A stretch of DNA of 64,000 nt from Lepidodermella squamata (GCA_047495785.1 JBLDXI010000009.1:3100001-3164000), one strand, 5' to 3'; positions 7,664 to 64,000 are shown, counted from the first letter of the stretch. Notes: generated by a model from the sequence alone, not told the origin. Made by a program: numbers and translations.

Positions 7664-10600
7664 ATGAACCTCCTGCTAAACGGACCAAAGGGCAGTTTTG
7701 TGATCGTCGACTACGTCATCCTGGTCCTCGCCGTCATATCAAACTGCGTCGTGCTTCAGGGCATTGTTCGGGCGAAATTCAACCTAGCCGGCTATCGGCG
7801 CTTTCTCATCTCCCTGGTCATCAGCGAGCTATATGTCTGCGCCGTTAATTTGGCCCTATTCATGTTCGAAATCCTTACGTGGTACATGCCGAACAATTTC
7901 GGCAACCACTGCGAGTCTCACGTTCTACGGTCGTTTCAGCTGGTTGGATTTTTCGGTAATTTTTCATGATTTCAAAAAAAAAGAAGCCAAAGCAGGAAAA
8001 TTCAAATAATTCCTTATTAAATTTTCCAGCAAATCTGCTCAATCTATTCGGCATGACAGTCGATCACTTCATAGGAATTGTACGTTATAAACGGCCTGAA
8101 TTGAGTCTTAATTTTAATTATTTTATTTTCCAGGTTTACCCGCTCAAATACCGATCGGTAGTTTTCCCAGATTTTTCGAGGATTTTTCTTCATTTGATTT
8201 TGTTTTAGTGGATGAATGCTTCTGCAGCTCGAACAGCCGTTTGTGCCATCTGGATTATTTCCTTACTATTAGGATTCGCCGACATGCCAGTCGCTACGGT
8301 CAAGTACTTTTCGCAAAAATCGACATCAACCGGCAAACCAGCTGTTTGCTCCGGAAACGTAATCTCCGACATTGTCGACATTCTGGAGAGCAGTGATTTT
8401 CTGTCGCAAAATCAAAACTTGCTATTCAGCCAGGGCGAAAGCGAGCGGCCGCGAGGTTCGAGCGCGTTGGGCGCCAACTTTTTCATGCGATACCCGAATG
8501 GGTCTGATGTTTTCAATACGAGTGACTACAACTACTACAACAACCCGGCGATGAGCGACCCGGCGCTGTATCCCTTTCTATTTCTTGCCCAGTCTGAATC
8601 TTACTACGATGAGAAATTACTCAGGTATGAAGTTTGCAGTAATTCACTAATTAAATGCAATAATTAAATTGTGACATTTTTTATTATTTTTTCCCAAATT
8701 TTTTAATTTTTCTGATGTCGGAATTTTATAATTTTTTATTAAATATCTTTATGTTATGCATTTTTTGGGCTATCTAAACCTGCCTAAACCTGCTCAGCCG
8801 AAATTTTATGTATCGCTGACGTTTAATCGTATAAATAAGGCGAGGACAAATACGACGGGACAAACATGAAAGTACACATAAGACGATCAATTCAATTCTA
8901 TACCAGGAGAAATAAGACGAGGACAATTAAGACAAATGAAAAGAATGATATTTAGGGTTACGCTTAGGGTTAGGGTTGCAGTTACGTTTAGTTACGATTA
9001 CGGTTAGTCTTATATGTCCCTCCTTAATTGTTCTCGTCTTAATTATTGTCCCGTTATAAAATTACAAATTAATTATCCTAATCGCCCTGGTCTTATTAGT
9101 ACCCTTTCCATCGCTGATTCTTTTCATTTCAATTTAATTTAATTTTTAAATGAATCTGAATTTTAGAGGAATAGAAGGAATTGATGCCATGTAATAATTA
9201 ATAAGGCGGAGCATTTTATCGGATTTCTTATTAATCGATAAATTCGGAAAAATGAATTTTTTGTGTGACTAATTTCAGACTGAAATCCCCATTAATTTTT
9301 CAATGATTTCTTCCTTTTTTTAGAGATACTCGAAGTGTCACGAAATCGAAAAGCAAGTCAAAAGCTCTCAAGCAGCCTCAGGCAGCAGCCATAACTTTCA
9401 GCTCATCTTCCTCTAGCCCTCGAAGCCAAGACATAACGTCGAAACCATCTCGGCTAACTGTTAATCATTCAAAACTGATTTTCTCTAACTTCAAAAACAA
9501 TATTCATATATTCATAGTTATCCTACGCGACGACTTTCAAGGCGACTACAACCACCCCACCAACTACGACATTTTTGTCGCAAATAACAACGACTTCGCT
9601 GTCGAGGCGCATTATTCAATCGCCCGAGAATGAAGTCGCCCTATGCGAGGCCCTGATCAAAGCTCAGAATAAAATGGACGACCACGGCTGGTGTTCACAA
9701 TATGGCCAAGATCCGTGGCTTGAAGTGTGCATGTACGTTAATTTTTTAGAAATTTTTCGATTTGATTTGATTTATTTTATTTTCTTTTAGAATGTCTCTA
9801 ACAATAGTATGCTTCATTTTCTTCTCTTTCTGCTACGGCAAAATATTCCGAAAGGTACAATTTGCCCCGTCTCGATGACGATTTCACCCGATTAATGATG
9901 ATTAATTAATCGATTTTTTTCGCAAAGGTGTTCGTTGAAGCGGAATTCAAGCGTCGAAAAACGAAAAAAATGGTCGTCACAACGTGTCTGCTGCTGAGTA
10001 CATTCGCAATTTGGTACGGATGATTATTGCACCTTCTGTCTAGGTCACATTTTTAGGACTGTCAGATAGTCCTTAAGTGTTATACCCTGGACCCCTGGAC
10101 CCACGCTCGGTATCCAGGTGTAAAAATTAAATAATTTGATTTGAAAATTCAATAAAATTCTGCTAAATTGAGAGAATGAGAAAAAAATGAGAATTTAAAT
10201 TTATTAAAATATTTTTTTTAACAGTTACCTGCCATTTATGCTCTACGAGTTTTTCATGATGTGGTACGATGACGCAGCTCAAGTTCAAAGTTCTACAACG
10301 TAAGTCCTAAAAATCAATAAAATTTGAGAAATTCTCTAGGAAATGATTGATTAAATTTGAATTTTCCTTTTACTAACTGCTTGATCATCGCATTTTATTC
10401 CATACTTCTCAGCCCCGATGAATCGGAATTTGAAGTCATAAGCTATGAAATGTAATGCTTACCGTAGTGTAAAAACCTTTAATTTTATTTAGTTTATTTT
10501 TAATTTTATCAATCAAGTAGAAGATGAATGAGTCTATTATCTGAACATAAACTCGTTCACATCACAATAATTCTGTTTCCGTTGAATCCTTTACTTTTAG

Positions 10601-11360
10601 CCTTAGAAAAATTCAACATTTTTCGGATTGAAATTAATTCTGATTTTTTCTATTTTATTTAATAAAGGTTTCTTCTCATTCACAACGGTAAAAGACTTCT
10701 TCAGTTGAAAATGTGGGACTCTTCAAATTTTTAATATTTCAGTTTTCAACTCGCTATTGCTTTCCTATCCTCTTTTCGATCCAATTATCTTCGTCGCGCG
10801 ATCTCCTCCTGTCATGAGGTAATCCTTATTCAAGGTGTCCCAAAGAAAAATAAGTTTAATTTCGATCCAGAAATGTTCTCGACCAATTCAGATGGTTGCT
10901 GCCCTGCTGCCCGGGGCCGATTCGATCCCGATTAAAGCAGACTCTATCAGAAACCAAGTATTCCTACGGTAGTGAAATGTCGAATCGAAGATCGACCCGC
11001 GTTTCAATTTCATACCCGAATACGAATCGAGAACGCGGCAGCAGTGTAACAGCTCACGAAAGTACGGCGACGAACACTGGCGATGAAAATCGGCCGGCGA
11101 AAAACGGCTCAGCCGCGTGTGAAGTGCCTCTGCTGCCGTTTGTCGCGGCGCCAAACGGCGGGCCCGCCGCAAATATTCACCATCTTAACATCGCCTCGCT
11201 CCACTTGCGAGACCCAAAGTGCTGCTGTAATGGAATTAACGGTATAGTCATTCCCCCGGCATCAGGTGACACCAAGGCGGTGAGAGTTAACGGAAATGGA
11301 GCAGCTGCGGCTCGAAAACTATACTTATTCGGCGCCGAGGCGGAAGATTACTATATTTAG
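7664..11360 (+). CDS. Class A GPCR paralog 1 (large ECL2)
   Basis: Exons ~7664-7955, 8030-8079, 8134-8157, 8209-8624, 9324-9459, 9518-9732, 9791-9853, 9928-10012, 10224-10299, 10668-10687, 10743-10818, 10871-11360. Motifs SLVISEL, MTVDHFIGIVYP, W4.50, WC, FCYGKIF, CYLP, DPIIF. Confidence 0.88.
8834..9104. mobile_element. Foldback/MITE-like element with degenerate TTAGGG core
   Basis: Left arm ATAAGACGAGGACAATTAAG pairs with right arm CTTAATTGTTCTCGTCTTAA around TTAGGGTTACGCTTAGGGTTAGGG at ~8952-9006. Confidence 0.6.
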
Positions 11361-13264: not shown

Positions 13265-16200
13265 ATGGAGAATTTCGCCTCAGTGCCTCATGAACTTGGA
13301 AGCAACTTTGACTATGATAACCAGACCGCCGTAGCTCCATCTGTCGTGGAGGAGGAACAGCAGCAGCAGCAGATTCAAGACTTCTTACAGGGCCCGAAAG
13401 GGCCGTTTATTCTCTACGATTACTTTGTTTCTCTACTCGCTGTTTTCGTCAATATCATCGTTCTGCAGTGCATAATTCGAGCGAGGATAAACTTGACGGG
13501 TTACAAGTATTTTCTGATCAGCCTCGGCCTGTCCGACTTGTACCTGTGCATAGTCAATTTGTGCGTGTTCGCCACGCAGGCGGTTGTTCAGCATTACAGC
13601 GGCGAGACAAGCAAATGCTGGACCCAGGTGTCGCGTTCGCTGCAAATCGTCGGCTTCATGGCTAACTTACTCAACATTTGCGGCATGAGTGTCGACCATT
13701 TCATCGGAATTGTGAGTCATTTTTCGATAAGGCAATAAGTACATACCCGATATGAGAGTAAAAGAACATTATAATTTCCAATAATATACTTGCTAGCCAA
13801 ATGACCAAATGACCAAATAAGCAAAGCTTTGGACTTGATAGCTTTGACTTAATTTGGTCAAATAAAATAAATTTTAATTACCAAAAAACAATTTAATTCA
13901 CCTTTTTAAGAAAGTGAGAAATTCATGAAATTATGATTTTCTGAACTTCAGAAGCCGACAAACTGCTAAATTTTGAAAATGATAAGCCTAAAATATTGCC
14001 GGGTTTTTTTCACCTTGGAACCCGGTACCAATTCAAAGTGCCCAACTAGCAAATATTCTAACGAAATCATGAGAAGTACCGAATTTGAGGCACCTTCCTT
14101 TTTGGGATGAATCTGACTGAAATTCCTGGCTTTTTACCTTATGATCCTAATTCGATGGCTACCCGATCAAGAAACTTGAAAATTTATTAATATTATTTCT
14201 TATCATGTTGAGAATTGGGGAAAACTTCTTCCATTTCTTCCAAACCAACAATTTGAATTCAATTTACCCGACACTGGTTTTTCCAAGAATTAGAAATTTA
14301 CCTTTTTGCCAATCGCACTAATTATTCTAAAAAGTTTGGATCGGTTTGAATTTCGTCAGTTTGCTTCGATTCCCCTCCACAAATACTCCAGGCAAAGAAT
14401 AGTAATTTGTGGAGAATAACCCCATAATAATCAAGTTATCAAGGGACTTCATCACTTCTAGTTGACTTCATCGGATTTCACGTCTAGTTCAAAGGTCATT
14501 AGAGCTCGGAAACCTAATTGTTGGAAAATCGATTCTCTGTAAAGGCTTTGACCTTACCCAGCCGATGGATGGCATTGCCCACCTACCTTATTTGTTTCAA
14601 TATGTTCTAATATCGCTAATACTTGCCCATCCCTAATAGTAGCCCAGGGTTGAGGTGTCAAGCCGGTCCTAAACGTAAATAATGAACGATTCGCCAACAA
14701 TTAATTTTCGAATTTCGCTCAAAATTTTGACGTTAAAATTTTAGTAGCAAGGGCTGTTATAGGAAAAATCCTGCTTTCAACCAGCGAGACAAATTTGACA
14801 CCGAAGGTCATTTTGGATAATGTTAAGTCGCATTTTACTTCCGGATAGTTGAGTCATGTTCCGGATATAAAGACACTGATCGGATGGAAATTTCTCACTC
14901 GGGAAATTAGGTAAAATTTAGGGACAGCAATTTTAGTATAGGAATTCGACAACTAATAATGTTAAGGTGGGTTTTTTATTGTTAGCTAAACAATTTTAGA
15001 TATTTTAATTATCTTCTGAATTAAGTGCGAGGTCGCCGTAAAACGTAATTCAAAATTTCCCGAAATTTTCAGAATTATTCTGAATATTGCGATCTAATTA
15101 TTTTCAGATTTACCCGCTAAAATACCACCAAATAATGACCAAGCGATGCCTCCGCGGCATAATCGTGCTAATATGGACAACAGCCCTGCTCATCGGAACA
15201 GCCGACGTACCCGTCACCTCCTACATGTACTACTCGTCCATGCACGACCGGCCGGCTAGAATCGAAGGCTCGACGACGCCTGATATGATGAGCAACAAAG
15301 CGGCTAACATGAACTGTCCGACGAGCAGCGAGTCGCGGGAGCAAATGATTTCACCCGCGAATCAGCCGCATTCATCCATGGAAGATACAAACACAGACTC
15401 GACGTTGTGGATGCAGGTGATGAACGATTTTGACCTGGATTTCACAGACAACACCCTGCTTAGCGCACTCGAGCGTGACTTGCAGGAGTCGAAGAAAACA
15501 ACCGTTGAGACAACAACCATGTACGAGGTTACTACTGAACTAACAACTAGAAGCAGACGGTCGACAAATCGGAAACTGCTTAGATCGGTTGGAATTTCGA
15601 CTACTATAGACTCGCCGTTGTCGGATTTCAAAACAACAACTTTTGCGACTGTGCGAAAATTTGGGCCGAAAAAACCGAAGAAACCGGCGATTGCCAAGTC
15701 GGCCAAGTCTAGTCTGCTAAACAGAACAGCTCCGGACCTGAAATTAGTTGTGAAATCTAGGAAACCAGTTAGCTCAACAGAACTGAAAGCTCATCATGAC
15801 ACGTAAGTTGATCGAATTTTTAAAATTTAAAATCCTTTTTTGAAATTCAAAAATATTATAGAAAATCGAGAAAAAATCGATTTGTTTCCGATTTATCGAT
15901 TTTGAAAAAATTAATTTGTATTATTTTTATTGAAATTCTGTATTATTTAATTTAATTTTAATTTATTTTAATTTTCAAAAATCACCACTATTTTTTTTCT
16001 TTTAGATCACCGACTGCACCAGCGCCAATTGCTTCTCCTCCTACGGACAATCGTTACAGCTGTTTTGTGAATCAATTTTTGAAGGCTCTTGAGACAATTA
16101 GTGTTGAGCAGAGTTCGCAGAGTTGGTGCAATTTTTACAACACGAGAAACTGGCTCGAATGGGCTGTTATGACGTCGACCGTCATATGCTTCGTCTTCCT

Positions 16201-17759
16201 CGCCGTTTGCTACTGCAAAATCTTCAACGGCGTCTTCTTTCGCGACACTTACGGTCCGAAGAAAAATGTCAAAAAACTCGTCACTACGACGTTTTTGCTT
16301 CTTGGTGCTTTCACAATTTGGTAAGTGAAAAAAAAATCATTAGAAAAAATCCAAAAATTAATTTCGGAATTATTGGTTTTTTAGCTGGCTTCCTTTCATG
16401 TTGTTCGAAATATTCATGGTGAGTTTGACTTTCCTATATAGGCACAGTGGAAACCTGGAATAAATTTGGTTTTTTTAGATTTTTGCCTTGCAAATCAACT
16501 TCAGTATTGCGCATACATCCCCAATGTGAGTGAATTTTCAATTTTCTTCTAGTATATCTAATATTTTTCTCCGATTTTTCTATAGCTTTCTCATTGTTCA
16601 TAATAGTAAGTTCCTTAGACGACAAGACTTGGAAATATGTCTTCAACTTTATTTTCTAGTTTTCAATTCGATGCTCTTATCGGCTCCATTGATTGATCCA
16701 CTTATCTACTCTGCCAGGTTGTCCATAGTTCGAAGGTGAGAGGCTTCCGAAATTTACAAAAAAGTTATATTTTGTCGTAGTAAATCTCAAATTTGGTCTC
16801 TAAGAAGATGATGAGTCTCGGAAATTCACAGTACAACAAATTTAGCCTTTCACATTTTTAGGATTTTATAAATAATCAAAAAAATTCAGGTAAATCCTCA
16901 TCTCCTTAATTTTCTAAATTTTTAGTATATCAGCTGATTTTCATTATCTTGACAATTGGTGTATCTTTTAGCGGCGCCACAAAAAACTTACAAAATAATT
17001 TGGCCCCAAACGCCAGACACGTAAAACGGTGTCATTTCCCGGATAATTCTATTAAACTGTATTGCAGCATTTCCCAGAAGTTGAATTTTGCGACTTCTTG
17101 TGGGCAATATTTTTCGCAATTAAACCTACAAGGAGAGTCGTCCATCATTTTACCCGCGAATTTACCGGAGAAAACCCGGATGGTAACAGGGTCGGTAATT
17201 TTCGCTATTTGTCCCGGTTGGACCAAATTTCTCCGGATTTTTCTTACCCATTTTCCGGGTTTTTTTTCTTTTTTTGCCTCAATTTTTGATCATTAATGAT
17301 GAAATTAATGAAATTAATGATAAAGACACGTTTTCAGACGATTGACTGGCTCAAATTATTTGGTACCACTAAAAGTAGGACTCGTTAACTATTGCGCTTT
17401 AATTAATGATAAATTGACGTGAATAACTTTATCAATAATCTATTTAACATAACGCTTGTTTTTGTTTAAAATGCAGGCATTTAGCGAAGCAAATCAAAGC
17501 TCTGCTTGAGCTGTGCTGGCCGTGCCGCCGCGACGACTTCTACCGGTCTTCGATCGCGCCTCGCAACCGCCGCCGCTCGTCATCAGGCGTGTCCCTAGGT
17601 GGGTACGAAGCCGCCGCCCGCTCGCTCTGCTCCACGCGTCGATCGACCGTAACAAGTACAGATCGCGAGCGATTTCTCATGCCGAAAATGAGCCTTCTCA
17701 CGTTATCATCCGAGCAATCCGCCGTCAACTTGTGCGCAGATCATGGCAAAATCATCTGA
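13265..17759 (+). CDS. Class A GPCR paralog 2 (large ECL2, ~245 aa)
   Basis: Exons ~13265-13711, 15108-15802, 16006-16320, 16385-16418, 16479-16525, 16586-16605, 16660-16735, 17477-17759. Motifs SLGLSDL, MSVDHFIGIIYP, SWC, CWLP, DPLIY. Confidence 0.9.
14590..14770 (+). repeat. Dispersed repeat, second copy at ~59990-60165
   Basis: Shared AATAGTAGCCCAGGGTTGAGGTGTCAAGCCGG...AATGAACGATTCGCCAACAA...AAATTTTAGTAGC...CTGTTATAGGAAAAA in the same orientation. Confidence 0.7.
17160..17275 (-). repeat. Dispersed intronic repeat; copies at ~47013-47075 and ~50268-50345 (opposite orientation)
   Basis: Reverse complement TCCAACCGGGACAAATAGCGAAAATTACCGACCCTGTTACCATCCGGGTTT matches the sequence from 50268. 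Confidence 0.7.
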
Positions 17760-20712: not shown

Positions 20713-23700
20713 ATGGCTACCATACTTGATGGCGCGAAAGGTGGATTCATCATCTTTGACTACATCGTTACAGCACTTGCTATTATTGGTAATAATCTCG
20801 AATTTTTCAAATGTTTAATTAATTTCGAAATTTTTGTCTCAAGGCAACTTTTTGGTGTTGGACAGCGTAGTCCGCGAGCGATTCAGCTTAATCGGCTATC
20901 GAAATTTTTTGATATCCCTCTCCATATCTGATTTGTACATCTGTTGTGTCAACATTGCCATGTTCATTCAAAACGCCATGCTTGCCTCGGCGCCGCTTCA
21001 ATACAGCTCAGGCAGCACCAAATGCACGTCGAATATCTTGAGATCTTTCCAACTGATCGGCTATTTTGCTAATTTAATCAATTTATGCGGAATTTCCATC
21101 GAACATTTTATTGGAACGGTACACATTTTTTAATTTTTTTGTTTTAAGTTTGAATTTTTTCTGTGATTTTTCAGATGTATCCCATGAAATATCGAGTGGT
21201 GCGTTTTAGTTTTATTACTTTGACCTACTTTCTATTCGTTTCTCTCGAAAATCTAGGTCATGAGCAAACGCGTTGCTCGAGCTTTCGTAATTGTTGTGTG
21301 GGCTCTATCGATCACTTTTGGTAATTAAAGCGACACCTATTTAAGACCTCAGAATAATTCGATAAAACTCTCAATAGGCATTATCGACTTCCCGATCGCA
21401 GCTATAGCTTTTCATTTCGGAAATGTTGGGACAAAAGTGCCAAAAGTAACTACCTTCGACAACGTCTGGCTGAATGGAACTCGCAATGGGAGCTCTGCGT
21501 TTAGTTACAAACTCGGCGGTGGGGTTGGCGATGGTCAGCTTAGATTAGCAGCTCAAACTACCGAAATCCCACTGGCAATGTCGATTAAATTTAACAACGA
21601 ATCAGCGCCGATAATGGTTGCTCAACCACATGATTTCGTCGCATCGTCTGGGTCAGGGTCGAGAGAAATGATAGCGGCCAGTGGCGAGTCCAGCCCAGAC
21701 GATGAAATCTCGCAAATCGACGTCGAACTGCTTTTAGATGCCATGTTTCCAACAGGGTTTGTAATTTACACAGCCTCCTTAATTTTTTTATAATTTCATT
21801 TTAGGACTAGCCATGATCGCCCGAGTGGGCCTAACGAAAGTGATGCTGAATATGCGCTGAGAAAATTGCTCACCGAGATGAAACAGAAGAGGTCGTCGCA
21901 GGTCACGTGGTGTTCCTATCATTCAAGGATACACATTTGGCTCGAAATCACGGTAAAAAATTGAGCAAACAAATAATTATACGATAAATTTCGAAAATTT
22001 ATTTCTAGGTCATGGCTTTTACGGTGCTGTGTTTTGTCTTCCTAATTATGTGCTACGGCGCCATCTTCAGAACCGTGAGGAGGTCGGCTACTCCTAAGCG
22101 GCGAACCGTAAAACTCACGGTGACTACAGCCCTATTTCTTGGCGCCTTTGCCATTTGGTAAATTATCCCTATAAAAATTCAATTTTTCAATTGATGACAA
22201 TTTTTAGCTGGCTTCCAATGATGATTCACGAACTTGCGATGTTGTGGTACTTGTTCACGGTTCAGCAGAAGCAAGCAAGTTCTGGGTCGGATTTAATGGA
22301 CAGCGGCAACGATGATAGCCTCGTACTTATGTCCAATAACTTTTCATCAACGTAAATTTGTGGAGCAAGTTTACGGATTTTCCAAAATGTTTTACTATTT
22401 TGTTACAGGAGCCTCATGCTACATTCCGCTTTCAATTCACTACTGATTTCCTATCCACTCATTGATCCTATTATTTACGCCATCCAAATTCCTGCAATTA
22501 AAAGGTATATTTATGTCTTATCATGTCGCACCTTATCAAAATTCTGAGTAACGATTTTTTCCATATGTTGAAAAATCTCTCATAATTGGCCATATGGCCT
22601 TGGGTATTCAGAAAAAACTCGAGAGCCCTTGGTGGCTCTCAAGACCCTGAAAAAAGAAGTTTTTGGCTGGCAAAATATAGTTTTTATGTTAACCTGGTTG
22701 TTATACCTGGAATTCGAGCGATCATAAATTAGGGATTTTCCTATAATTAGCCTTAGAGAAATGAAATTTTCCTCTGATCTGAAACCTTGATGTAAAATGA
22801 TAATGAACTGATCTAAAACGCCGAGCGAGCTCGGTGCAGCCAAACGAGCCGATTTCGTTGATATTTTGTTATCAACCAAGGGCTAATTTTTTACTGATAT
22901 GAAAAGGAAGGCGTCATCGAATACCGAGAGGGTTAAATTTTGCTATCGTTTCCCAAAATTTGCGGAAAAACGCCAATCAAATTGGAAATTTCTTGAAACG
23001 AAAATTTTGTTCCCCACTTTTAAGGCGGACTTCTTTTTATTAATTTTTGCAATTAATTCATTTCAATCAAGCGGACAATCAAGCAGAGAAATTAGCCGAA
23101 TTAGCTCGTTTTTCAGTTTCTCATAATCAATTTAAAATATCCGCCTTAAGATTTTAATTTTGATTTTACGCCTAAACTATTCAACTTCATCTCCCTGAAG
23201 ATGATTTCTGTTAGAAATCGAAACGTCGGAAATAAACTGTTAGCGCTAAATTTCATCAACCGTTTGTAATTCATTTCAAGTGTGCAATCTGATAAAAAAA
23301 AACCAAGTTGACGGCAGGTTCAGAAGAACAAAATAAATAATATTTTGTTGAAACTACTTCACAGAGAGGGCAAATACCCTGAAAATCTAAGGAATTCAGG
23401 AACTGCGTACGTTTGAATACTTTGCTTCGAAAGCTATAACAATTTTCATTTTTTTCTACTTGATTTTTTCTTGAAAATTTTGCCAAGCTTTTCTATTTAT
23501 TTTAAACGTGACATAATAGTGTTTTTATTTTAATTTTAGGCGGATTCTACACCGATACGCCTGGTTTTTGCCTTGCGTGCAGAACTATATCAAAGAATCG
23601 GCGGGAATTCATCGAAGCACAACGATGACGAATGACCATGCTGATTCATTCGCGAGACAACGCTCGCCGCAAACCAGCGTCGCGACAACAGGCGGCGCAA

Positions 23701-44985: not shown

Positions 44986-45673
44986 AATGTCTTCAAATTA
45001 AAATATTATAATGTTGTTTTTATTTTGAAGAAAATAATGGAAATAAAATTCAATAAGTTGAGTTTGACGTCATCCAAAGTGATCGATTTATTTTATTGGT
45101 AAGTTTTATTGGGACGCAAAATAAGAGCGAGACTCATCGCCGGCAGTTTCTTGTTTGTCCTCAGCGGGACACTTCAAGAAGAAGTGTGTTTTTTTTGTCT
45201 CAAATTTACGAGCTGAAAAATTTCCCAGCGGACTTGATTATTTATCCGATTTACGCAAATTTAGGCGGTTTTTTTTCCTGATAAAATGATTATATTGCGT
45301 GTGAAGTGCGTTTCATCTTGAAAGAATACCTACAGGTAGAAAAAGATATCGCTATGGGTAATTGAACCATAGCGATGGCGAAAAAATCGACAGCTAGAGA
45401 TTATTTCCGCTAAATTACACAATTTCAAGTGATTTCTTTTGATTTTGATTGAGGTTTACGCATGCCGGCTGATACTATTTAACTAGGACCTGCTGTGTAG
45501 CGCATATTTGAGGAGTCACAAAAATCGCCTTTCGGCTGTGATTATCAGTACAAACCCTGCTAATTTGATTTTACGCGCTCTGGTCGATACGCATTTGTAG
45601 CCAAGGTATTGAACATTTTATTGAAAAAAACTTTACCATCATTTTTTTACCGAATGAAGACACTTGGATAAAA

Positions 45674-48072
45674 ATGCTGGAATATGACACAGCCCCGCCC
45701 TACCCAACTATGCCAGCTCCGACTTCGTCCTTACCTATCATCCTACAAGGCCCTAAGGGCATATTTAAATTATACGATTACCTCGCAACAGCCGCTGCTA
45801 TACTAATCAATTTAGTCGTCCTTCACAGCGTGATTCGAACCCGAATCCACCTGACAGGCTACAAGTACTTCCTGGTGAGTCTAGGCGTCAGTGATCTATT
45901 CCTATCCCTGATCTACACAGCGATATTCGCGATTGAAATCATCCGAACTTACAATATTGATAGCAAATGCTGGGGCCAGATTTTTCGCAGCCTTGAAATG
46001 TCCGGTTTCATAGCGAATCTGCTCAATCTCAGCGGCATGAGTGCTGACCATCTTATCGGAATTGTCTACCCGTTTTCGTACGAAAAATACAGCCGTAAAT
46101 CGAATTTAAAACTGGGAGTTGCGATTTTATGGACGACTGCCTTAATTCTCGGCTCGGCTGAGCTGCCAATGGCTACGATTTTCTACTATTTATCTAGCCA
46201 AAGCACGAACGAATTCGCTAATTTCGGCGTTATGCAAGCTGCTAATTGTTCGCAGCAAAATGCTAGCCTGTCTATGAATAGTTCGAGCTTAATCTTCCAA
46301 GCAATGGGCCTTCGAGACCTGATGACTGCCAATGATGAAGAATTGGAGGAGGAGTACGATGCCCATGATTCGAGTTTAAATTTTTTATTTATTAACGATG
46401 ACGGAGTTACAACGACTGATGCTACAACGGTTGTGCCAGCTACAACTGAACCTATTGCTGAGAGACAGGAAATACCTTCGCCGGATTTTACGATTGATTT
46501 AGTTCAGGATGGACATCCTTCGTATACTACGTATTTCTATCTGAATGCTGGCAATAATTTCACCCTGCTTCGAATGGGGGATTTATTGAAAGAGGCCGAA
46601 TCGTTCGATAACGCAACAGAGATTATAGCTTCGGAAGCTCCAGTTCCCATGGAAATTCCTGTATACAGGTAAATTTCTGGAAAAAATAAATGCTTGGTCG
46701 ATTTATTTGAAACATTAAAACTGAAGTTGCAGCCCTTAATTTTCTGATTTTGAATTATTCCATTCTTTATCGATAATGACGCACCCTGGGACCCCAGGAT
46801 CTTATATTTAACGCTAAAGGTTATGTATAATAATATAATTACCATCCTAATAGACTGTCGATATCGGAAAAATCACTGAATTGTAAAATCGATAGAGGAA
46901 ATCGATATCTTGTCTGCAGGCCGATCTCTGAAAGTATTTTGCCATGGAAATGCCGATCAACTACGAAACTTGTCGAGCAGAATACAAAAATACGAACAAT
47001 TCCATTATAGATAGGTAAAATACCAAAAATTACCGAAATACTCCAATCGGGTTTTTTCGGGTTTTTTCGTGGGAATTGAATACCAAATGTTGCTAGTAGG
47101 TAAAATTTGGTAAAAAATACCAAAATCATTTACCAAAAATTAGCACCTCAAAAGTAGCTTATGAGACACCCTGTAATAAGATCTGCCGGTTACAGCCACG
47201 ACTAATGCATTGTGGGATATTTGGCTTTCAGGTTTGAAGCTTTAATTAGGTGTACGCTTTGGCGGTCCTATTTTTTAATTTTTTTAAATATATAATTAAT
47301 TTGTTTAGTTCCCCATCGAACACTGACTACACCTGTGTAGTAAACAGTATCTTGAATGCACTGGACAACGTTGGTAGCAACGACGATTCTGCGAATCCGG
47401 CTCAAAGTTGGTGCCGATTTTACCGAAACGCCCCGTATCTGGAGTACGCCATCATGGCGCTGACTCTGCTCTGCTTCACCTTCGTCATCTACACGTACTG
47501 CATGATCTTCCACGAGGTAAAAACCCGGACTTGTCTGAGCCTGAAAAAACTTCGGTTCAATTTTTGTACCAGGTTTTCTACAAACCCGAACCAGCTAAGC
47601 GAAATGTTAGACGCCTCGTCATGACTACGCTTATCCTTCTGGGAGTATTTTGTGTTTGTTATTTGGTAAAAATTCTAATAATTAATTATTGAAACGAGAA
47701 AAATAATTGAATTTTCCCTATCAGCCTTTCATGATTTTCGAATTAACAATGGTACTGGCTATGCACTTCAATGTCTCCGCCGCTATTCATATGAAAAAAG
47801 CGTGGCCAAGGTTTTTGATTTATATTTTCGAGTAATTTTTTTTAATAACGCATTTATTTTATTTTCCAAGCTTCATGGTTGCGCATAACATATTCAATTC
47901 CCTGCTGATAACTTCGCCGCTAATTCAGCCGCTATTGTACGCCGGCCGGTTGTCGACTGTACGAAGGTTTGACTCGTCTTTTCGCCCCCTGAATTTATCA
48001 ATAATTCACTCCCATTTCATTCACAGGCAAATATGGAAAGATTTGGCTGAATTAAAGTCACGATTTCGATAA
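45674..48072 (+). CDS. Class A GPCR paralog 7 (large acidic ECL2, nearly tailless)
   Basis: Exons ~45674-46668, 47308-47516, 47573-47664, 47724-47809, 47871-47966, 48026-48072. Motifs SLGVSDL, MSADHLIGIVYP, SWC, CYL|P, QPLLY. Confidence 0.92.
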
Positions 48073-49138: not shown

Positions 49139-52100
49139 ATGCCATCGCCCGCAGCAACCTTAGCCCCAACAGCTTTCCTAACCGAAGGCCCGAAGGGGGG
49201 TTTTGTAATCTTCGACTACTCCGTATCACTTCTCGCCGTTATCGTCAACATCATCGTATTGCGAAGCGTAGTCAAGGCGAAGATCCACCTTATCGGGTAT
49301 AAATACTCGCTGGTCAGCCTTGGCGTCTCAAATCTCTACCTGTGCTGTGTTAACATTGCGATTTTCGTCGTTGAAGCCGCGCGGCTTCACAACTTCAACT
49401 CGGAGTGCTGGGGTCAGATATTTCGCAGCCTTCAAATATCAGGCCTTATCGCAAACTTACTCAACCTTTCTTTCATGTCGTTCGACCATCTTATCGGCAT
49501 TGTTTATCCTTTCATGTATCAAAAGGTTCGTTTAATCTATTTTTTACAAATTTATGCGAAAAAAATAACTTCTTAAGGTGGAATTTTTTATTTCAAAGTC
49601 TATGACGTATTTTGTCGTTCGGCTAATGAGCCCCGTCTACTCTATTAGGAAACGCTTCAAATCAAATTAAAATAATTAAGGAAAACAACAAGCAGTCCAA
49701 GTTTTCGGGATCCCGTGAGCGTATAGCGTGGCGTAGTGTCATGTGAGCCCTTGATTGACGCTTGTCCAATTGCCATTATTCTCAACATTTATCATTATCT
49801 CGTTGACGCGTGCTTTTTTTTCTCCGAATTCCTGAAGGACACGTCATCAATACAGTTACAGAAGTTGCCCTGAACAAGCCTATATGTCACTTGTACATTT
49901 TGTCCTCCTAATCCTTGATAGAATTGTGAGCAAAAGTAGAACGGAGCGAAATTCAAAGAATCTCACGATTCTAGATCAGATCACAAAATGTCCCATATAT
50001 AAGCTTAAACGGAGATTAAAGGTTACATTAAAATAAAAAAATCCCGATGCCCTAAGAATGCTAAAATAGTTATAAACAGATTTGAAAAAATCTAGAAATT
50101 TGGCCAACCCGGGTAAAATACCGAACCAGGTACCAAAATAAAGCCTGCCCATAAGCAGGACAGGCAAGAAACCTACACGCGAATGGCTTCAGAAACTAAA
50201 ATGAGAGATGGAGCGCGGGAAATGTTCAGGAAAATTCAAAGAAGCATGAGCATTGTAATCAAGTATATCCAACCGGGAAATATACCGAAAATTACCGAAC
50301 CAGTTACCATCGGGGTTTTTCGGGTTTTCTCGGATTTTTTTTCATTTGAGTTAAATCGCGGATAAAAGATTGAATATTAGAAACAATCATTTGCATTTCC
50401 TTAAAAAAGTTGCCAAATTAAATAATAGTTGGGACACTCTTTATACCGTAAAATACCGAACCAAACCAGAGACATTCCGAATTTTTCTCCCGTCAATTAT
50501 GAATCTCCTCAGTAATATCGCGGAAAAAGAGCGGAATAAATGATTTGATTAAAAATATTATATTAAAATGCCTAGTTAATAATTATGGGACACGTTGTAG
50601 TACGGCTTAAAATAGAATAAAATGTAAAACCTAATTTAACCCTGGATAAATTACATTGAATTGGCCCTGAAAAAATCGATAATTTTATGTTGCAAATTTA
50701 TAGGTGACGAGAAAGTGCGTAATCAAAGTGATAATGGCAATACTGTGGTCGATAGCGATTTTTCTGGGCTCGGCCGAGTTGCCGTTCACGACATTCCTGT
50801 ACCTCAGCGGTTATCAGCAGCCGGCGAATGCGAAGAGTTCATTCAATCGCAACAACGAGAACAACGGCCTTAACTGCTCGCAGTACTCGGACCGCATGCA
50901 GCTGCCCGATCTAGGCGAAGCTCTGTTCGCGCCGCCTTCGGTCCGCCTGAATGGAGACTACAACGAAGAAGTCCCGGCGCAGATGCATGAATTGCTGAAC
51001 TTCAACCTCGATACTACAACACTATGGGCAATGCAGAAAGAAATTTTAGGGGCGGAGGAGATTTTGAGCCGGGAGAGAAGCCGCGAAACTACGACTACAA
51101 CCATGCGAACTCCGAGCTCAAAATCAAAGTTGACGACGACAACATCGCCGAGGACGAAATCAAAACAAAAGCCGGGTAGAACTACGACAGTGTCCGGTAG
51201 AAGTCGAAAGAGGCATCGGCGTGATAATTTAATGTTGGACATGGACCGCGGCCAGCCGGGGTCTGAAGAGTACCAGTGTTTGATGCAGGAATTTATGGCG
51301 AAGCTAGGCAAGACAACGCGGAAAACGTCGCGCGTGAAATCGTCCGGTTTCCATAACTGGTGTGGAATTTACAAAAATGCGCCTTATCTCGAGTATGTCA
51401 TCATGTTTCTGACTATAACGTGCTTCCTTTTCGTGGCCTTCTGCTATGGCAAGATTTTCAAGGAGATTTTCTTCGCCGGCAACTCGGCCGGCCGGCACAA
51501 CGTTCGAAAGCTGGTCATGACAACTTTCATGCTTCTCGGAACCTTTTCAATTTGGTAATTTTTCATTAATTTTACATTTCAAATTTTATTACATTATAAT
51601 AATATTTTATTACATATAAAATACATTTTTTAATTTTTTTATGGAAAATTCCGAGTTTTTTATATTTAAATTGTTGAAATTTATCGGTTTTTCGAAGCCA
51701 TATTTGCGATATTGTTGATTATTTCCCATGATTTTTTTTATGTCTAGATTTTTCGAATTTAATGTCTTTTTTGGCCTGGACTGAGGACCCTAGACTAATA
51801 GTAATAACGGCACACTCAAAAAGCTCAGGGCTCAAAATTCGATTTATTTATAGGAAATATTACTGCTATAGCAACTATTATTGCTGGAGAGTCACTAAAT
51901 AATTTTTATTATTTTTTCCTAGCTATTTGCCTTTTATGGTCTTCGAGCTATCGATGGTCCTGGCGATGCATTTCGATCTAGGCTCGTCTTTCGTCATGAA
52001 AACGTCCCTTCCAAGGTAGAAACAAAATCATCTTTCAGCTTTCATCCTAATTTAACCCGATTTTATTCAGCTTTATGATCGCCCATAATATCTTCAATAG

Positions 52101-52484
52101 CTGCTTAATTACTTCGCCCTTACTCCAGCCCTTACTATACGCCGGTCGTCTATCGATTGTTAGAAGGTAATATCGGATTTTTTCAAAAAATTCACGATTT
52201 TAAAATTGTCCGCATAATATAGACAAATTCGAAATGATCTCAAGGACGCTGCTAACAAGTGCTGCCAATGTTTCTTCCCGGACGATGACGCATTTGCCCT
52301 AGGTTCGAGGCGAACAAGTCGCCGTAGTACGATATCACTTTTCGGCAGCAAAACGATGGAGTACGAAACCGCGGCGAAGAACTTGTGCGGCCACGGTCTC
52401 GGTAATGCCCGCAATTTGTGCGACCCAGCTGGTCTGGCCTCACCGCTCGAAACCCGCCAACTATCAACAGGCACGACACAATAA
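49139..52484 (+). CDS. Class A GPCR paralog 8 (large basic ECL2)
   Basis: Exons ~49139-49524, 50704-51554, 51923-52015, 52071-52166, 52223-52484. Motifs SLGVSNL, MSFDHLIGIVYP, NWC, CYLP, QPLLY. Confidence 0.92.
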
Positions 52485-54346: not shown

Positions 54347-57300
54347 ATGTCTTTTCACGACAATCCAACGGCTTTTTTAACCGATGGGCCAAAAGGCATG
54401 TTTGTCCTGTTTGATTACTCGGTATCGCTAGTCGCTGTTATCGTCAACATTGTCGTACTTCGAAGCATTATCAACGCTAAAATCCACCTGACTGGCTACA
54501 AATTTTGCCTCGCAAGTCTTGGCGTGTCAAACCTCTACCTGTGCTGCGTGAATATCGCCATTTTCGTCGTTGAAGGAGCGCGGCTGCATAACGTCAACTC
54601 GGAGTGTTGGGGCCAGATTTTTCGGAGTCTTCAAATATCCGGCCTCATGGCTAACCTCCTGAACCTGTCCTACATGTCTTTCGATCACTTGATTGGCATT
54701 GTTTATCCCTTCATGTACTCAAAGGTTTGTTGTTGATTTTTGATGCATGCTAATTAAAATTTAATTGCCGAAAAATGTAAATAATCCTCATTTTTGCACA
54801 TACCTATGGGTATTTTTTACTTTGAAAATATCAAAAAAATATATGTTCGTGCACTCTCAGATTGGTATTAAAGCCCCTCTACTGAAGAATTTCCAGAATT
54901 TTCAAAATTAAAATTTCGAAATTTTTTATTTTTTATTGGGTAAGAAATGAATCATGGAAAAATATAGGGCGAATGCATGGGTTGATCGCAATAATCGTGA
55001 AAAATTGCGGGCGATTCATTCACCTAAGTCATTCATTCATACCTTAATGAATGACACAAAAATAAAGGGCGTTTCTTTGAACATTTAATTTTGCCTAGAA
55101 TTATAGTTTTTCGAAATGTTCGTCTTTTAATCAAATTTTCAGAAGAAAATCACTCGAATGAGGAATTGCACCCAATTTTCAAGGTAGATTTTGAATTATT
55201 TTTTTTTTGAATTTTTGAATTTTATTGAAATCGGAATTATTTGAATTGGAAAATTTGAGTTTTTACCAACTCCGAAAACTCCGAAAAGTATTTTTTACAG
55301 AATGGCGTGTGGTCTCTGATTTCGTCTTCTGATTAGGACTCGAATCGGTACAGTGGATATGAATCCATGATAAGGACGTCCGAATGCGTGGCCTCTGATT
55401 TTGGACAATAGTCAATATAGCCAATAGTCCTGATAAATAGCGGGACACGTTGTCAAGTTTCGAATGTCCTAAAATTAGACGCTCGATTCAACCCATGAGA
55501 GCTGGTCCAAGTCAGACCACAGCCCAATGCGTACAGCGTACCGAAACTTGATCAAATTTTCTTTTCTGGGTTCCGAATTAAATATTTCTGAGTTTTTTTT
55601 ATTTATTAGGTACTATTTTGAAAAAAAATCAGAAAAATCATTAATTAGTTGTTGGAATTTTCGCGACATTTCAGAGCAGAATTTCTGAAATGTCGTTACT
55701 CGTTACACGTTAAAAATATGATGATAATAATTGTTTGTAGGAAATAAAAGAAATTATACTGTAGTTATACTATGTTTTATTCCAGTGATTTTGTAATCTC
55801 TTTCGTAATTTTTTAGTTTTCGAGCAAAGTGGCTATCCGCATTGCTTTGGGACTTCTTTGGTCTGTTGCCATCCTACTCGGCTCAGCTGAACTTCCACTA
55901 ACAACAATAATGTACCTAACCGATTACCGGCAATCTAGCATCAACACTGAGATGCTCAACCCAGCAATGTCCCGCCTCGTCTCCCAAAGTGGGAAGGTCA
56001 ATTGTTCAGGCGACGCTCTCCACGGCTTCGACCCGATGACCCTATTAACCGACCCTAACTTCCAAATAAGCCATTTAGACCCTCGAATAATCATGTCACT
56101 GAAGGAAGACCTCGGCTTTCAAAACGGCGAGCCAACCTCGACAACCCTTGCTTTTTTGAACAATTTTATCAGCCAAAATTCCGAGGTGACTAACCGGCGA
56201 CGCCGCACCCCGCCGATTCTAATGAAAAACGGCCTAGTTCTATCGACAAAAGCAACGGCGAGAAATAGGTCGAAATCAACGACGAAGCAGTTTCGGACAA
56301 CGAGAAAACCGCCAGCAATTAGGCTAAAAACGTCGAAAATGTTCAAAGACGCCAGGCCGTCGTTGCGTAATAAAAATAAAGAGACAATTAAACGGATTCA
56401 AGATGCGACATCCAACAGCGCCCATCACCCTACTGTCCTGAAGCCGAATTACCCGTGTATTTTGCAAAGTGTAATCGGCGTGTTGGAGAAGAGCAAATCG
56501 GCGTCGAGAGATCAGGAAACAACGCAGTTTGAAGTTTGGTGTGGAATTTACAAAAATGCGTCCTACCTCGAGTATGCGATAATGGGCCTAACCGTGCTCT
56601 GTTTTGTCTACATCGCCGTTTGTTACGGCATGATTTTTCGCGAGATTTACTTCAAAGAAACAACCGCGAATCGGCATAATGTTAGAAAATTAGTTATGAC
56701 TACCCTTATATTGCTTGGAACTTTCTCGTTATGGTGAGTCGTTGATCTCGAAAATATGGGAATTTTTCCCGAATTTGCGCATTTCTTTATTAGCTACCTT
56801 CCATTCATGGTCTTCGAAATGGGTATGGCTCTAACTGTCCACTTTAATTTCGTCACCGAGGAGGATCTTCCAAGGCAAGTTTCTGAATATTGAGATTGTT
56901 CCCAGCTTTTTGCGTCCTCAAATTTTCAAATTATTGAAATTAAGGATGCTAGCACACACATTTTCTGAGTTTTTTTTTACGAATTTCGAATTTCATTTAT
57001 TTATCGATTTAGCTGAGCCCTGTAACGGTGGGGTTTTTTCTTCTTTCTTATATCTCGGAAGGTTCTCGATATTGCTTTCCTGCGCTGCTGATATCGGGAA
57101 AATCACGATGGCTAAACCTCATATTTTTGGTTTCCCAAGTTTTGGAATGTTGGAAAAACTCCACTGAAACATGCGAAGTACTTTGTTTTCGACCCCGTAA
57201 TAATAGATTCGCCAATTTCGTGAATGAAAGAATCCTGTTAGCTCATACTGTTTTATTATCACGCGTAGGGGGTCAGTTTACGGGCCATACTTTAGCCTGC

Positions 57301-58211
57301 AGGTCAGATATCGATTCCTATAGTGTCGATTTTACAAATCAGTGATTCTTCCAATATCGGAAGTCTCGGAAATCAACATTGAAAAATGTATGAACCTTGC
57401 TGATGATACCGGGTATGTCGCTTGAATAATGAGTGATTTTTTATCGAACGAGAAATGAATATAAGTACAAATCGCAAAAAGTTAAGTGCCAAGATGCAGT
57501 GCTGGAACTTTAATAGTGCTGGTGTAGTGTTTCGAATATATTGAAACACAGCGATAATATTTTCTCTGAAGGCCGGAGGATAACGCTCTCAAATCGACCG
57601 AATAGCAATCCAGCGATCCAATAGATCCAATTGGCCCGAATAATGAAAATGATAAAGAACTTTTGAAAAAATGGAAGACTTGAAACTCGAAATTACGTCT
57701 TTCAGAAAAAATCGATCGCTGTTATCCTTGGATCTTGGATGAATCATGAAATCTGACATTTTAGCACTAAATTTTTTATCATTTTGAACCAATTTTCGTA
57801 ATTTTGACCCAAGCATTGAAAAATTATAAAACACCTAATTTTCATTTTCTCTTTTAGATTCATGGTAGTTCACAATGTCTTCAACAGCTTCCTGATAATG
57901 TCCCCACTTTTACAACCTCTGCTGTACACTGGCCGATTATCGATAGTAAGAAGGTGCGGAATCCTCTAATTTCACCTTGCAATTTTGAATAATTATTACA
58001 ATATTTTTCGCGCTATTTTAGGCAAATTCTTGTCGACGCGCGTGAAACGTGCCGGTGGTGCTGTTCATGTTTCCAGCGGTTGAGCGCCGAGAAGTCGGAA
58101 GAGCGCCGGCGGAGTAGTGCGCTGTTGTTCTCTAAAAAGTCTGTCGAGTACGTAGCCGGTGCTAGAAATTTGTGCGGCGATGGCGAAAGCTCTGTCCGCG
58201 ATTCTTTGTGA
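54347..58211 (+). CDS. Class A GPCR paralog 9 (large basic ECL2; one GC-AG intron)
   Basis: Exons ~54347-54723, 55817-56733, 56794-56874, 57858-57953, 58022-58211. Motifs SLGVSNL, MSFDHLIGIVYP, VWC, CYLP, QPLLY. Confidence 0.92.
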
Positions 58212-58802
58212 CGACAAAAAATTATATTACACGCGCACGTCATGCCGCCGATATCTAGGTCATGTCGCATTAAATGCTTTCTAATTATCACGTGAAATAA
58301 GGTTTTCAATTCAATAAAATTTCTGAACAAATTCACGATACATGACCGATGTGAGTTAAAAACAGCCATGTCTCTGAATTATTTGTGTATCGAAAGACAC
58401 ACTGGCTGTATCGAAAATGGCAAAGACTACGACTTACAAGGAAGGGGCTTCTCTCTTCAATCCGACACTATTAATTCTTCGCTTTATAAATGAGTTCTGG
58501 AACGATTTTATTGAACTCTTATTTCCTGAGGAAAAACGATTATGGGAAAGGATAATAGATTATTTTCGAATGGAATGCATATATGGCAAATTCTTTCCAT
58601 TCACTCAACTTTGTCGAATTGTCACTGCTAATTATCCGTATTTTAACGGACTGACGATCAGGTGACGGCGTCTCTGTCGGGGCTAAGTTTTTTGTACGAA
58701 TTCGGACTGAGACAAATACGAGTATCTGACCGATTCGATAACATTTTCGATTTTTCGCTTCACGAGGCAGACATCTTTTTTAACAGTAAATAGTAAATTA
58801 CT

Positions 58803-61735: not shown

Positions 61736-61941
61736 AAAAACCTCATTAAAAACAAATTTTAATTTAGAAAATATACACATAATTATATACAAATAGGCAC
61801 TTCGTCTCCAGTGAATTTCTTCAGCAAATTTTCTTGCCCATCCACATCATTGACCTTGCGCGTGATTCCCACTTGTTTTTTGAATAACTCGGGACTTATT
61901 TTTTAGCAGGAAAAAATCGATATTTAATCAAATTTTAACAG

Positions 61942-64000
61942 CACTGACTTGCCCGGCGAAGTCACATCATGCATCCGCGTGTATCCTCCCGAATGGATTA
62001 GGGCGTCGGCTATGATGACCCTGTTCGGCACTAAAGGAAATTTCGTCATTTTCGACGCTATCATCTCCGTTGCCGCCCTAATTGCCCATTGCCTAATTAT
62101 CGGCCCAACTCTACGCTGCAAATTGCGACTCATCGGCTACCGGCGGCTGCTTATCAATCTTACCATCGCCGATATTTGGGCTAGTACCGTGAATTTAGCC
62201 TTTTTAGCCTACCAGCTTGGTAATGAGTACAAGCCTGATTTGGTTCCTTACCAGAAGTGCGGCGCTAATTTACTGCGCAGCCTTCAGCTCACTGCCTACT
62301 GCATTAACCTATTCATTTTAATCGGCATGAGCTTCGATCAATTTGTTGGCCTGTCTTACCCGATGAGATACTCATACGTAAGTGATGAACTGCATAAGTG
62401 TAACCATCACTTGTTGATTGTTTCTTTCCCACAGCTTCTCAACACTCCATTGGCTAAATCATTGCCTTATGTCGCGTGGTTCATATCGCTTTGCATAGGT
62501 ATGCATATCACAATCCCAAGAATAGTCAAATTCCGAAGACTCGAAGACTGAAAAAATTACAAAATCCTCGGAATTAGCTACTTTCGAAAGTTTCATCTTT
62601 CAAAATTTTCAATGGAAAATTCAAGTTTTAGGATACAACATTTCCTTCCGATGGGCTTTTCAAGATTCTATTCCTCTCCCCTGAATCTCAATTTTTCTGT
62701 GTTAATGCCTAACCAGTAATTAATCTCAATATTGCACGCATTTTTCGGCATCAGCACGCATTTTTCAGCGGTAATTTTATGAGTAATACTCATCGATATC
62801 GATTTTTGGTATCGATTTTACAAATCAGCGATATTTCCAATATCACCGCCGAAATTGAGGTCCCATTATTATAAATTTTCTTATTTTTCACAATTTCCAC
62901 TCCAGTTTCCTAGCACCCTATGCATGTCGGAGAATTTTAGAGGTAAGCTTATTGGATAGCTGAAATTAAAAAAGCAAGGATTTGTAAACTCAATAATGAA
63001 AATCGATATCGGTTATAACTTGCGAATACCGTCGATAGCCCAAAATATCGAATGCCGAAAATTTTTGATAAACACGATAATGAAAATGCCTGTTGAACGT
63101 GATGGCAGACAAATCTTTAGGAATCAAAATTTTTTTTAAATTAAAAAAGAATAAAAAATAAATCAACTTTATTGGTTTAATCATGTATTTGAACCTTAGG
63201 CATTGTTTTGACCATAATTGCTCATTTCTTTTTTTGGGTAACCATTATTGTTGACTTTTTTATAGCATTTGCTGGATATCCAATAAATGCCCTTAGCTAT
63301 TTTGCCGCAAATGGGGAAAATGTCGACTTTCGAGGTAGGTTCCATTTTCAGAGATAGAACTTGGTAGAACTTGAACCTTATTTTCCATCTCTGTATTCAG
63401 AAACTATGATCGAAAATGGACTCGACGTTAGAGAACAGCGCTTTCGAACTTTAATCGGACTACAGCAAGATTCTGGCAAAATGAGCTTGCCAAAACTGCC
63501 GTTAAACTTATCAGCCGCAGACTTATTGGATCACTTGGCCCCAGATAACAAACGGCGAGAATTCTGCGACTTCAACCTTCAGAGTAAAATTATGCAAGAA
63601 TGCTTCGTCATGCTGCTGACTGGCATCAGCTTCCTGATATTGCCGGTTACGAGCGGCATAACGATCCGCAAAATTCGAAACCATTTAGGAGCACTACAAC
63701 AAAGTACATCGAAGCTTTTCGTAACTACGTTCCTGCTCATTGGATGCTTCATTTTATGGTAAGAATTTCTGTGGTTTCAAAATTCTCTATAATTTTGTTC
63801 TCAATTTCAGTTGGGTGCCCTGTAAGTTTAGGCCTGATCACGTTTTCATGACAGAATTGTTTTCCTTTACAGTTATCGTTTTCGAATTTGGCCTGCTCAT
63901 AAGTTATAGTTCTAAGAGTGGAGACGGCTCGAAATGGCCACTCGACAAACTTCTTCCTTTCCAGAACTTTCTTCACTCGCTCAACATGTGTTACCCTCTA
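61942..64000 (+). CDS. Class A GPCR paralog 10 (most divergent, shorter ECL2), 3'-truncated by window edge
   Basis: Exons ~61942/62012-62377, 62434-62498, 63266-63334, 63401-63758, 63811-63821 (11-nt microexon), 63873-end. Motifs GTKGNF, NLTIADI, MSFDQFVGLSYP, EFC, CWVP. Confidence 0.85.

Follow-up and report, generated by a model that had tools for sequence, protein, structure and literature searches.

G protein-coupled receptors (GPCRs) of class A are thought to read their ligands through the helical pocket, through short loops and in some cases through the N-terminus, and the C3a receptor C3aR is treated as an oddity. A 64,000-nucleotide stretch of the Lepidodermella squamata genome (GCA_047495785.1, JBLDXI010000009.1:3100001-3164000; the whole stretch that was analysed, here called the window) raises the question of whether an entire receptor family can carry its main extracellular domain inside extracellular loop 2 (ECL2). 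The window is eukaryotic, has a GC content of 38% and contains multi-exon genes. From position 7664 to its end we located ten plus-strand, co-oriented paralogs (P1 to P10), which have common conserved blocks and form a tandem array, starting at ∼7664, 13265, 20713, 28612, 33438, 41893, 45674, 49139, 54347 and 62012. A first-pass annotation of the locus, made from the sequence alone, had described ten receptors in one orientation with conserved transmembrane (TM) segments, short N-termini and an ECL2 of about 165–245 residues in nine paralogs and about 85 in the tenth. Our measurements agree with this description: 13–50 residues precede TM1, and ECL2 spans 159–239 residues in P1 to P9 and ∼81 in P10 when delimited by conserved motifs, or 172–244 and 87 residues, respectively, by an independent hydropathy measure.

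The P8 gene model is backed by RNA and served as the template. At the other loci, in-frame GT/GC-AG pairs were scored by similarity and splice-site quality, and P1 was found using tblastn with the P8 model together with a search for GT-AG junctions. The models of P1 and P10 are uncertain inside ECL2, and P10 ends at the window edge. The genes and their ECL2 coding spans (lengths between motif boundaries, in residues) are as follows.

7664..11360, plus strand: P1 gene, ∼10 exons, 594-residue model
8311..9718, plus strand: P1 ECL2 coding span, ∼174 residues, putative intron at 8632-9517
13265..17757, plus strand: P2 gene, 7 exons, 630-residue model
15234..16153, plus strand: P2 ECL2 coding span, 239 residues, intron at 15803-16005
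20713..22520, plus strand: P3 gene core, 9 small exons
21416..21940, plus strand: P3 ECL2 coding span, 159 residues, canonical cysteine only
28612..32208, plus strand: P4 gene, 6 exons, 548-residue model
30132..30668, plus strand: P4 ECL2 coding span, 179 residues, single unbroken exon, 7 NxS/T sequons, net charge -7
33438..37500, plus strand: P5 gene, start codon and extracellular loop 3 exon uncertain, TM7 exon at ∼37225-37322, tail exon from 37381
35327..36004, plus strand: P5 ECL2 coding span, 226 residues, one exon, net charge -14
41893..45270, plus strand: P6 gene, tail exon (∼45130-45270) known from similarity only
42815..43582, plus strand: P6 ECL2 coding span, 170 residues, intron at 43204-43461
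45674..47966, plus strand: P7 gene, without the TM3/TM4 intron, model stops short of the tail exon
46190..47438, plus strand: P7 ECL2 coding span, 203 residues, net charge -24, intron at 46669-47308
49139..52484, plus strand: P8 gene, exons 49139-49525, 50704-51554, 51923-52015, 52071-52166 and 52223-52484, 562 residues
50806..51387, plus strand: P8 ECL2 coding span, 194 residues, net charge +10, Thr clusters, R-x-[KR]-R motif
54347..58217, plus strand: P9 gene, 5 exons, 556 residues, one GC-AG intron
55919..56566, plus strand: P9 ECL2 coding span, 216 residues, net charge +16
62012..64000, plus strand: P10 gene, divergent, cut by the window end
62520..63690, plus strand: P10 ECL2 region, ∼81–87 coding residues, exon structure uncertain

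Are the long loops present in mature transcripts? We compared two public sequencing runs over positions 50700-56690, one RNA-like (X1) and one from the DNA of another individual (X2). X1 contigs contain GT..AG joints at 51553>51922, 52013>52069 and 52164>52221, and the X1 depth is 0.07 in the largest (368-nt) P8 intron. Loose contig ends match the upstream exons of P8 and P9, and with them all four P8 junctions are seen or implied; joints and loose ends together thus fix the five-exon, 562-residue P8 model. Joints between opposite strands, also found in the RNA contigs, were rejected as splicing because they occur in low-depth intergenic DNA too, and we take them as contig artefacts. X1 covers the ECL2 exon of P8 at a depth of 17–25 with no joint inside, and that of P9 at a depth of 10–26 with no internal GT..AG joint. 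For P5, 99% of the words sampled from the ECL2 exon (35201-36082) occur in X1, compared with 25% for a 9-kb genomic stretch.

Intron positions vary widely between the paralogs. TM4, ECL2 and TM5 are encoded on one exon in P4, P5, P8 and P9. P1, P2, P3, P6 and P7 contain one intron within ECL2, the best donor of which is located at the extreme end of a long open frame, so that nearly the whole frame remains exonic (in P2, the donor is GTAAGT and the acceptor follows a T-rich tract). Stop-free runs in non-exonic DNA have a mean of 15 codons (99th percentile, 80), and the chance of finding 150 open codons is ∼6e-5 per locus. The variable region of the loop has a GC content at third codon positions of 0.54, compared with a GC content of 0.35 in non-exonic DNA, and a coding-type codon-position composition. 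The long ECL2 is real translated sequence kept in mature mRNA, with RNA for P5, P8 and P9; in these three paralogs it is not spliced out as an intron.

We analyzed what the loops are made of. Most of the sequence is polar, charged and disordered. Ser and Thr account for 17–26% of the loop in P1 to P9 and for 10% in P10, Pro for 4–7% in P1 to P9, and every loop carries 1–7 NxS/T sequons, whereas dense Thr/Ser clusters (8–29 residues) are found in six of the ten paralogs only. The mucin-like module envisaged in the first-pass annotation is reduced to short clusters in six paralogs. Tandem repeats were not found in any of the ten loops and, given this composition, we do not place the family among the mucin-domain proteins, whose Pro/Thr/Ser-rich region is extended and usually repetitive. 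P7 (-24) and P5 (-14) are strongly acidic and P8 (+10) and P9 (+16) basic, as had been noted, but P2, listed among the strongly basic loops, has a net charge of only +5. The variable loop of these basic paralogs (P2, P8 and P9), and of no other among the ten, contains a furin-type motif, R-x-[KR]-R.

The middle of the loop had been reported to lack alignable similarity. Indeed, even the variable parts of P8 and P9, the two most closely related paralogs, show no significant similarity (local score z = 1.1 against shuffles) despite 76% sequence identity before ECL2. The sole pairwise standout in the variable part is P2 and P9 (z = 5.3), which we attribute to their shared basic, Thr-rich composition. 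Searches with blastn and tblastx among the ECL2 exons matched the flanks only, in the same frame, and left the variable middle unmatched at the DNA level and in other frames, and we rejected a frameshift or cryptic homology as the origin of the variable region. Some positional order is nevertheless found, as an anchored alignment suggests that the first loop cysteine (Cys1) and a Thr-rich patch tend to occupy matching positions across paralogs, and one mid-loop helix is predicted (see below).

Is the loop still diversifying, as the first-pass annotation had implied? In the P8 ECL2 exon, X2 differs from the reference at 23 sites, 21 synonymous and 2 non-synonymous (pN/pS, the ratio of non-synonymous to synonymous polymorphism, is ∼0.03), and in the variable part we count 15 synonymous and 0 non-synonymous differences. 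A second haplotype over P9 contributes 5 synonymous and 3 non-synonymous differences. Within the species, purifying selection acts on the ECL2 loop. Between paralogs, synonymous divergence (dS) is saturated (1 to >2, even for P8 and P9), which renders the ratio of non-synonymous divergence (dN) to dS unusable for detecting positive selection. The saturation also indicates that the array is old. The absent loop similarity is accounted for by long divergence under looser constraint, without diversifying selection still being at work. The dN of the conserved ECL2 tail is 2–5 times that of the TM parts.

In X2, the 23 differing sites of the P8 ECL2 exon (50737-51501) fall within ∼850 nt and correspond to a synonymous divergence of ∼11%. 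The adjoining 368-nt intron (51555-51922) has 2 differing sites and one 1-nt deletion, and positions 53871-56368 are identical. This contrast between exon and intron could have arisen at a recombination breakpoint that separates deep haplotypes, or through balancing selection.

Inspection of the loop cysteines revealed a defined pattern. Eight of the ten paralogs have three cysteines in ECL2, and P3 and P10 have the third (Cys3) only. Cys1 is located 12–34 residues past TM4, Cys2 in a conserved ‘Y-x-C’ helix, and Cys3 in a ‘W-C’ motif, which every paralog has 9–10 residues ahead of TM5. The cysteine in TM3 is invariant. Cys1 and Cys2 are both present in 13 cases (8 paralogs and 5 clusters of relatives) and both absent in 10 (2 paralogs and 8 clusters), with no case retaining only one, and the number of ECL2 cysteines is always 1 or 3, never 2, in the window paralogs and in relatives from other organisms. 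Together with the invariant TM3 cysteine, this co-occurrence argues for two putative bonds: the canonical TM3-Cys3 disulfide, both cysteines of which are kept, and a Cys1-Cys2 bond. The pattern suggests a disulfide staple, which would close a loop of 117–181 residues.

AlphaFold predictions were obtained for a relative covering TM1-TM5 and for the P8 exon covering TM4-TM6. In the relative, the predicted local distance difference test (pLDDT) score is >90 over TM1-4 and <50 over the variable part, and two helices are placed just before TM5. In the P8 exon, pLDDT is <55 over most of the loop, and two helices again precede TM5. The P8 prediction contains in addition one amphipathic mid-loop helix, with low-to-moderate confidence.

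To which receptor class do these genes belong? The Pfam domain 7tm_1 (PF00001) matches the P7 open reading frame (ORF) with 43.9 bits (cut-off 30.5) and other exon pieces below threshold, and is carried by the relatives as well. The RNA-backed P8 model contains all seven TM segments with N1.50, W4.50, P6.50 and Y7.53, and helix 8 with its cysteine is kept. TM6 reads CYLP or CWLP, TM7 QPLLY or DPxIY, position 2.50 is N or D, and TM5 is without proline. In place of DRY, nine of the window paralogs have D-H-[L/F] and P10 has D-Q-F, and all relatives examined have D/E-[HQN]-[FY]. As judged from these motifs, the loss of R3.50 is a deviation specific to the family, by which a class A fold is not excluded. 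Structure comparison shows that the fold agrees with class A structures. Among solved structures, MC4R, MC2R and aminergic receptors come closest (E 1e-9 to 1e-6), and the best 60 such matches comprise melanocortin, aminergic, adenosine and cannabinoid receptors. Of the named proteins outside the family, the nearest are spiralian: one from Owenia, which is uncharacterised, and one from Argonauta labelled ‘ACTH receptor-like’. The ten genes are an old tandem array of a lineage-restricted class A (rhodopsin-type) GPCR subfamily, and the constant seven-TM (7TM) scaffold proposed earlier is borne out by their conserved TM core.

A profile of TM1-TM3 searched against 1.84 billion representative proteins returned 53 proteins at E<1e-10, followed by a gap to generic class A receptors. 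All 20 relatives whose source was looked up are ORFs without a name on metagenome contigs, in line with the lineage-specific repertoire that had been postulated. Most of the complete relatives also have a long ECL2: the TM4-TM5 spacing has a median of 121 residues in the relatives (range 29–167) compared with 25 residues in generic class A matches from the same search. In a related organism, a 22-kb metagenome contig (L001, 15.8 kb covered) contains a syntenic array in more compact form. Its plus strand bears a P1-like 3' end, genes resembling P2, P4/P6 and P7/8/9, and a fifth gene that matches no particular paralog; a further P1/P3/P10-like gene is located on the minus strand. A feature search of a protein atlas returned nothing beyond generic clusters (7tm_1, Srw and Srx) with members from mixed phyla.

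We next compare the family with known systems. The best sequence and fold matches belong to alpha-group class A receptors (melanocortin, adenosine, cannabinoid and aminergic receptors and spiralian orphans), with which it has in common the DPxIY motif in TM7 of several paralogs and a TM5 without proline. The E-values to these receptors are only 1e-9 to 1e-6, however, the ECL2 of outsiders from the profile search is ∼25 residues long, and R3.50 is lost in the window family. ECL2 is very short in melanocortin receptors, which are also without the TM3-ECL2 disulfide, whereas the window family keeps both the TM3 and the ECL2 cysteines.

We found no characterised receptor family with this long-ECL2 layout in the papers searched, where full-text searches returned C3aR and unrelated cases only. 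C3aR has a short N-terminus, a flexible, glycosylated ECL2 of ∼172 residues and the usual TM3-ECL2 disulfide (PMC10518620), and the window family resembles it in its short N-termini, large flexible ECL2 and TM3-ECL2 cysteines. The canonical cysteine of C3aR is located in a β-hairpin right after TM4, with the insertion following it (PMC10518620), whereas the insertion precedes this cysteine in the window family. This review mentions no further C3aR disulfide that would act as a staple (PMC10518620). C3aR is also a single receptor type, whereas the long loop is a family trait here, with paralog-specific loops. Membership among the C3a/chemoattractant receptors was rejected on two grounds, the absence of C3aR from the best 60 solved-structure matches and the different placement of the insertion.

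Flatworm PROF1 receptors are lineage-restricted, highly diverged class A orphans that are barely found by standard searches (PMC3261222), and the window genes are comparable to them as a lineage-restricted, diverged orphan family. PROF1 genes are intronless, with D[R/K][C/M] in TM3 and [N/S][F/G]..[Y/F] in TM7 (PMC3261222, Table 3), and a term search of the paper shows no mention of extracellular loops (PMC3261222). The window genes have up to ∼10 exons, RNA-confirmed introns, DH[L/F] and [Q/D]P..Y, and we do not assign them to PROF1. Tandem, lineage-specific, diverged class A arrays are likewise known from nematode Srw/Srx genes and from lophotrochozoan chemoreceptor expansions, the latter having variable extracellular loops with an ECL2 of 25–30 residues (PMC11886862) rather than the 159–239 residues seen in P1 to P9. 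Pfam places the window family outside the nematode families, with 22.3 bits for Srx (cut-off 23.8) and no Srw match. A long ECL2 was thus known before from C3aR, a single receptor type; of a whole receptor family with a giant ECL2 we found no description.

What could such a loop do? In the arrangement that we propose, TM4 would be followed by ∼12–34 residues, Cys1, ∼120–180 residues of mostly disordered, polar and paralog-specific sequence, the conserved helix with Cys2, a second short helix with ‘W-Cys3’, and TM5. The variable part would confer a paralog-specific charge and N-glycosylation sequons, and its Thr clusters in six paralogs are likely O-glycosylated. The partner of Cys3 would be the invariant cysteine of TM3, the pairing known from other class A receptors, and Cys1 would pair with Cys2, thereby stapling the base of the big loop. 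The stapled loop would then stand in for the missing N-terminal ectodomain as the main extracellular recognition surface and give each paralog its own partner or ligand-capture specificity, and the conserved two-helix module over the helical bundle would relay binding to the 7TM core. We infer this function for the loop and consider it the best explanation, with a confidence somewhat above even.

Several observations speak against this explanation or narrow its basis. RNA support covers P5, P8 and P9 only, and two of the remaining models (P1 and P10) are uncertain. R3.50 is lost family-wide, which bears on G protein coupling. The two-helix module reaches a pLDDT of only 55–85, and the predicted folds are those of partial proteins, with its packing over the pocket lying outside them. 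The AlphaFold prediction of disorder draws on a shallow alignment and counts as weak evidence. The polymorphism evidence amounts to 31 differences, which come from two paralogs and from the contigs of a single other individual. Finally, the loop sequence is not conserved between species when P7 is compared with its relative P0001, which a passive, compositionally constrained role would fit too.

The loop may indeed be a passive glycosylated spacer or shield without specificity, which drifts as long as it stays polar and disordered while the 7TM pocket binds the ligand. The low AlphaFold confidence over the variable part, the missing loop similarity between paralogs or species, the sequons and Thr clusters, and the elevated dN of the conserved ECL2 tail are all consistent with such a role. 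However, the 15 synonymous and 0 non-synonymous differences in the variable part of P8 indicate a constraint tighter than a merely compositional one, the spread in charge from -24 to +16 among paralogs means that no single composition is kept, and the co-occurring Cys1-Cys2 pair argues for a defined topology. We regard the passive role as possible, though not probable.

A bolder version of the recognition hypothesis, which we put forward tentatively and consider improbable as it stands, holds that the ectodomain has moved from the N-terminus into the stapled ECL2 and there binds endogenous secreted partners or surface cues, and that a convertase cuts the loops of the basic paralogs to yield two-chain GPCRs, which the staple keeps joined. 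Candidate partners would be small secreted cysteine-containing proteins and the CUB-domain protein encoded inside the array (listed below).

Cleavage could also be the purpose of the loop itself. A cut, for instance at a furin-type site, would create a receptor of two chains linked through the Cys1-Cys2 and TM3-Cys3 bonds, or expose a tethered agonist, and the R-x-[KR]-R motifs of P2, P8 and P9, which the putative disulfide staple spans, are compatible with protease sensing or processing. Yet the motif is absent from seven of ten paralogs, basic runs are expected by chance in basic loops, and no conserved candidate agonist segment follows the sites, which makes this reading unlikely. For the sensing of proteases, microbes or contact, which the first-pass annotation had raised as a possibility, these motifs are the sole hint.

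An equally doubtful alternative is that the receptors do not signal through G proteins but act as decoys, adhesion or scaffold proteins, with the loop as an interaction surface. It would account for the finding that all family members seen have H, Q or N in place of R3.50, and that W6.48 and N7.49 are often replaced as well. Against it stand the retention of N1.50, W4.50, P6.50, Y7.53 and of helix 8 with its cysteine, and the many working chemoreceptor families that lack DRY.

That part of each open frame is an intron and the true ECL2 short is very improbable: five paralogs do have an ECL2 intron and RNA is at hand for three only, but the RNA contigs cross the entire P8 and P9 loops without a joint and X1 contains 99% of the words sampled from the P5 exon, which largely refutes a gene-model artefact for these three, and the excess of synonymous differences in P8 (21 versus 2), the small chance of 150 open codons and the donor positions at the extreme ends of the open frames count against it as well.

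Several gene models and neighboring sequences deserve mention. The GC-AG intron of P9 has its donor (GCAAGT) at 56875, where the P8 counterpart uses GT. In P1, a basic, Ser-rich open frame at 9307-9630 represents a possible extra ECL2 exon. P10 contains two TM4-like open frames (62435-62548 and 63200-63354), which could be mutually exclusive exons or the leftover of an exon duplication. P3 is followed by a 247-residue Asn/Ser/Asp-rich open frame on the plus strand (23568-24311) that opens with a helix-8-like segment and is probably the long cytoplasmic C-terminal tail exon of P3; a Pfam match of this frame to the MGC-24 sialomucin is weak and below threshold. Three further genes flank or interrupt the array.

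40-1480, plus strand: M13 peptidase exons (gene fragments; Pfam), flanking the array
1777-3156, minus strand: single-exon cytochrome P450 (Pfam E 5e-34), flanking the array
38443-38989, possibly to ∼40051, plus strand: CUB-domain gene between P5 and P6, inside the array (Pfam CUB E 5e-5 and 2e-7 in two adjacent open frames)

The CUB-domain gene could encode a secreted partner of the receptors or be an unrelated insertion. Intergenic DNA at 41081-41208, 53487-53550, 59948-59970 and 61680-61730 contains the telomere-type hexamer CTAACC (GGTTAG) in short, degenerate arrays, ∼280–800 bp upstream of the start codons of P6, P9 and P10. A perfect (TTCCT)x38 microsatellite is located at 7295-7487, ∼180 bp upstream of the P1 start codon.

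Taken together, our analysis describes an entire expressed receptor family in which ECL2 is several times its usual length and holds nearly all the difference between otherwise similar paralogs, and in which an extra, stapling disulfide appears to be present too. No named member was found among the 20 looked-up relatives in a survey of 15 billion public proteins, and in this animal group a sizeable repertoire of receptors hence escapes standard annotation. If the stapled loop sets specificity, as we propose, the family would represent a second evolutionary route to a receptor ectodomain and would provide a natural set of receptors, constant in scaffold and variable in loop, for studying how ECL2 gates activation.

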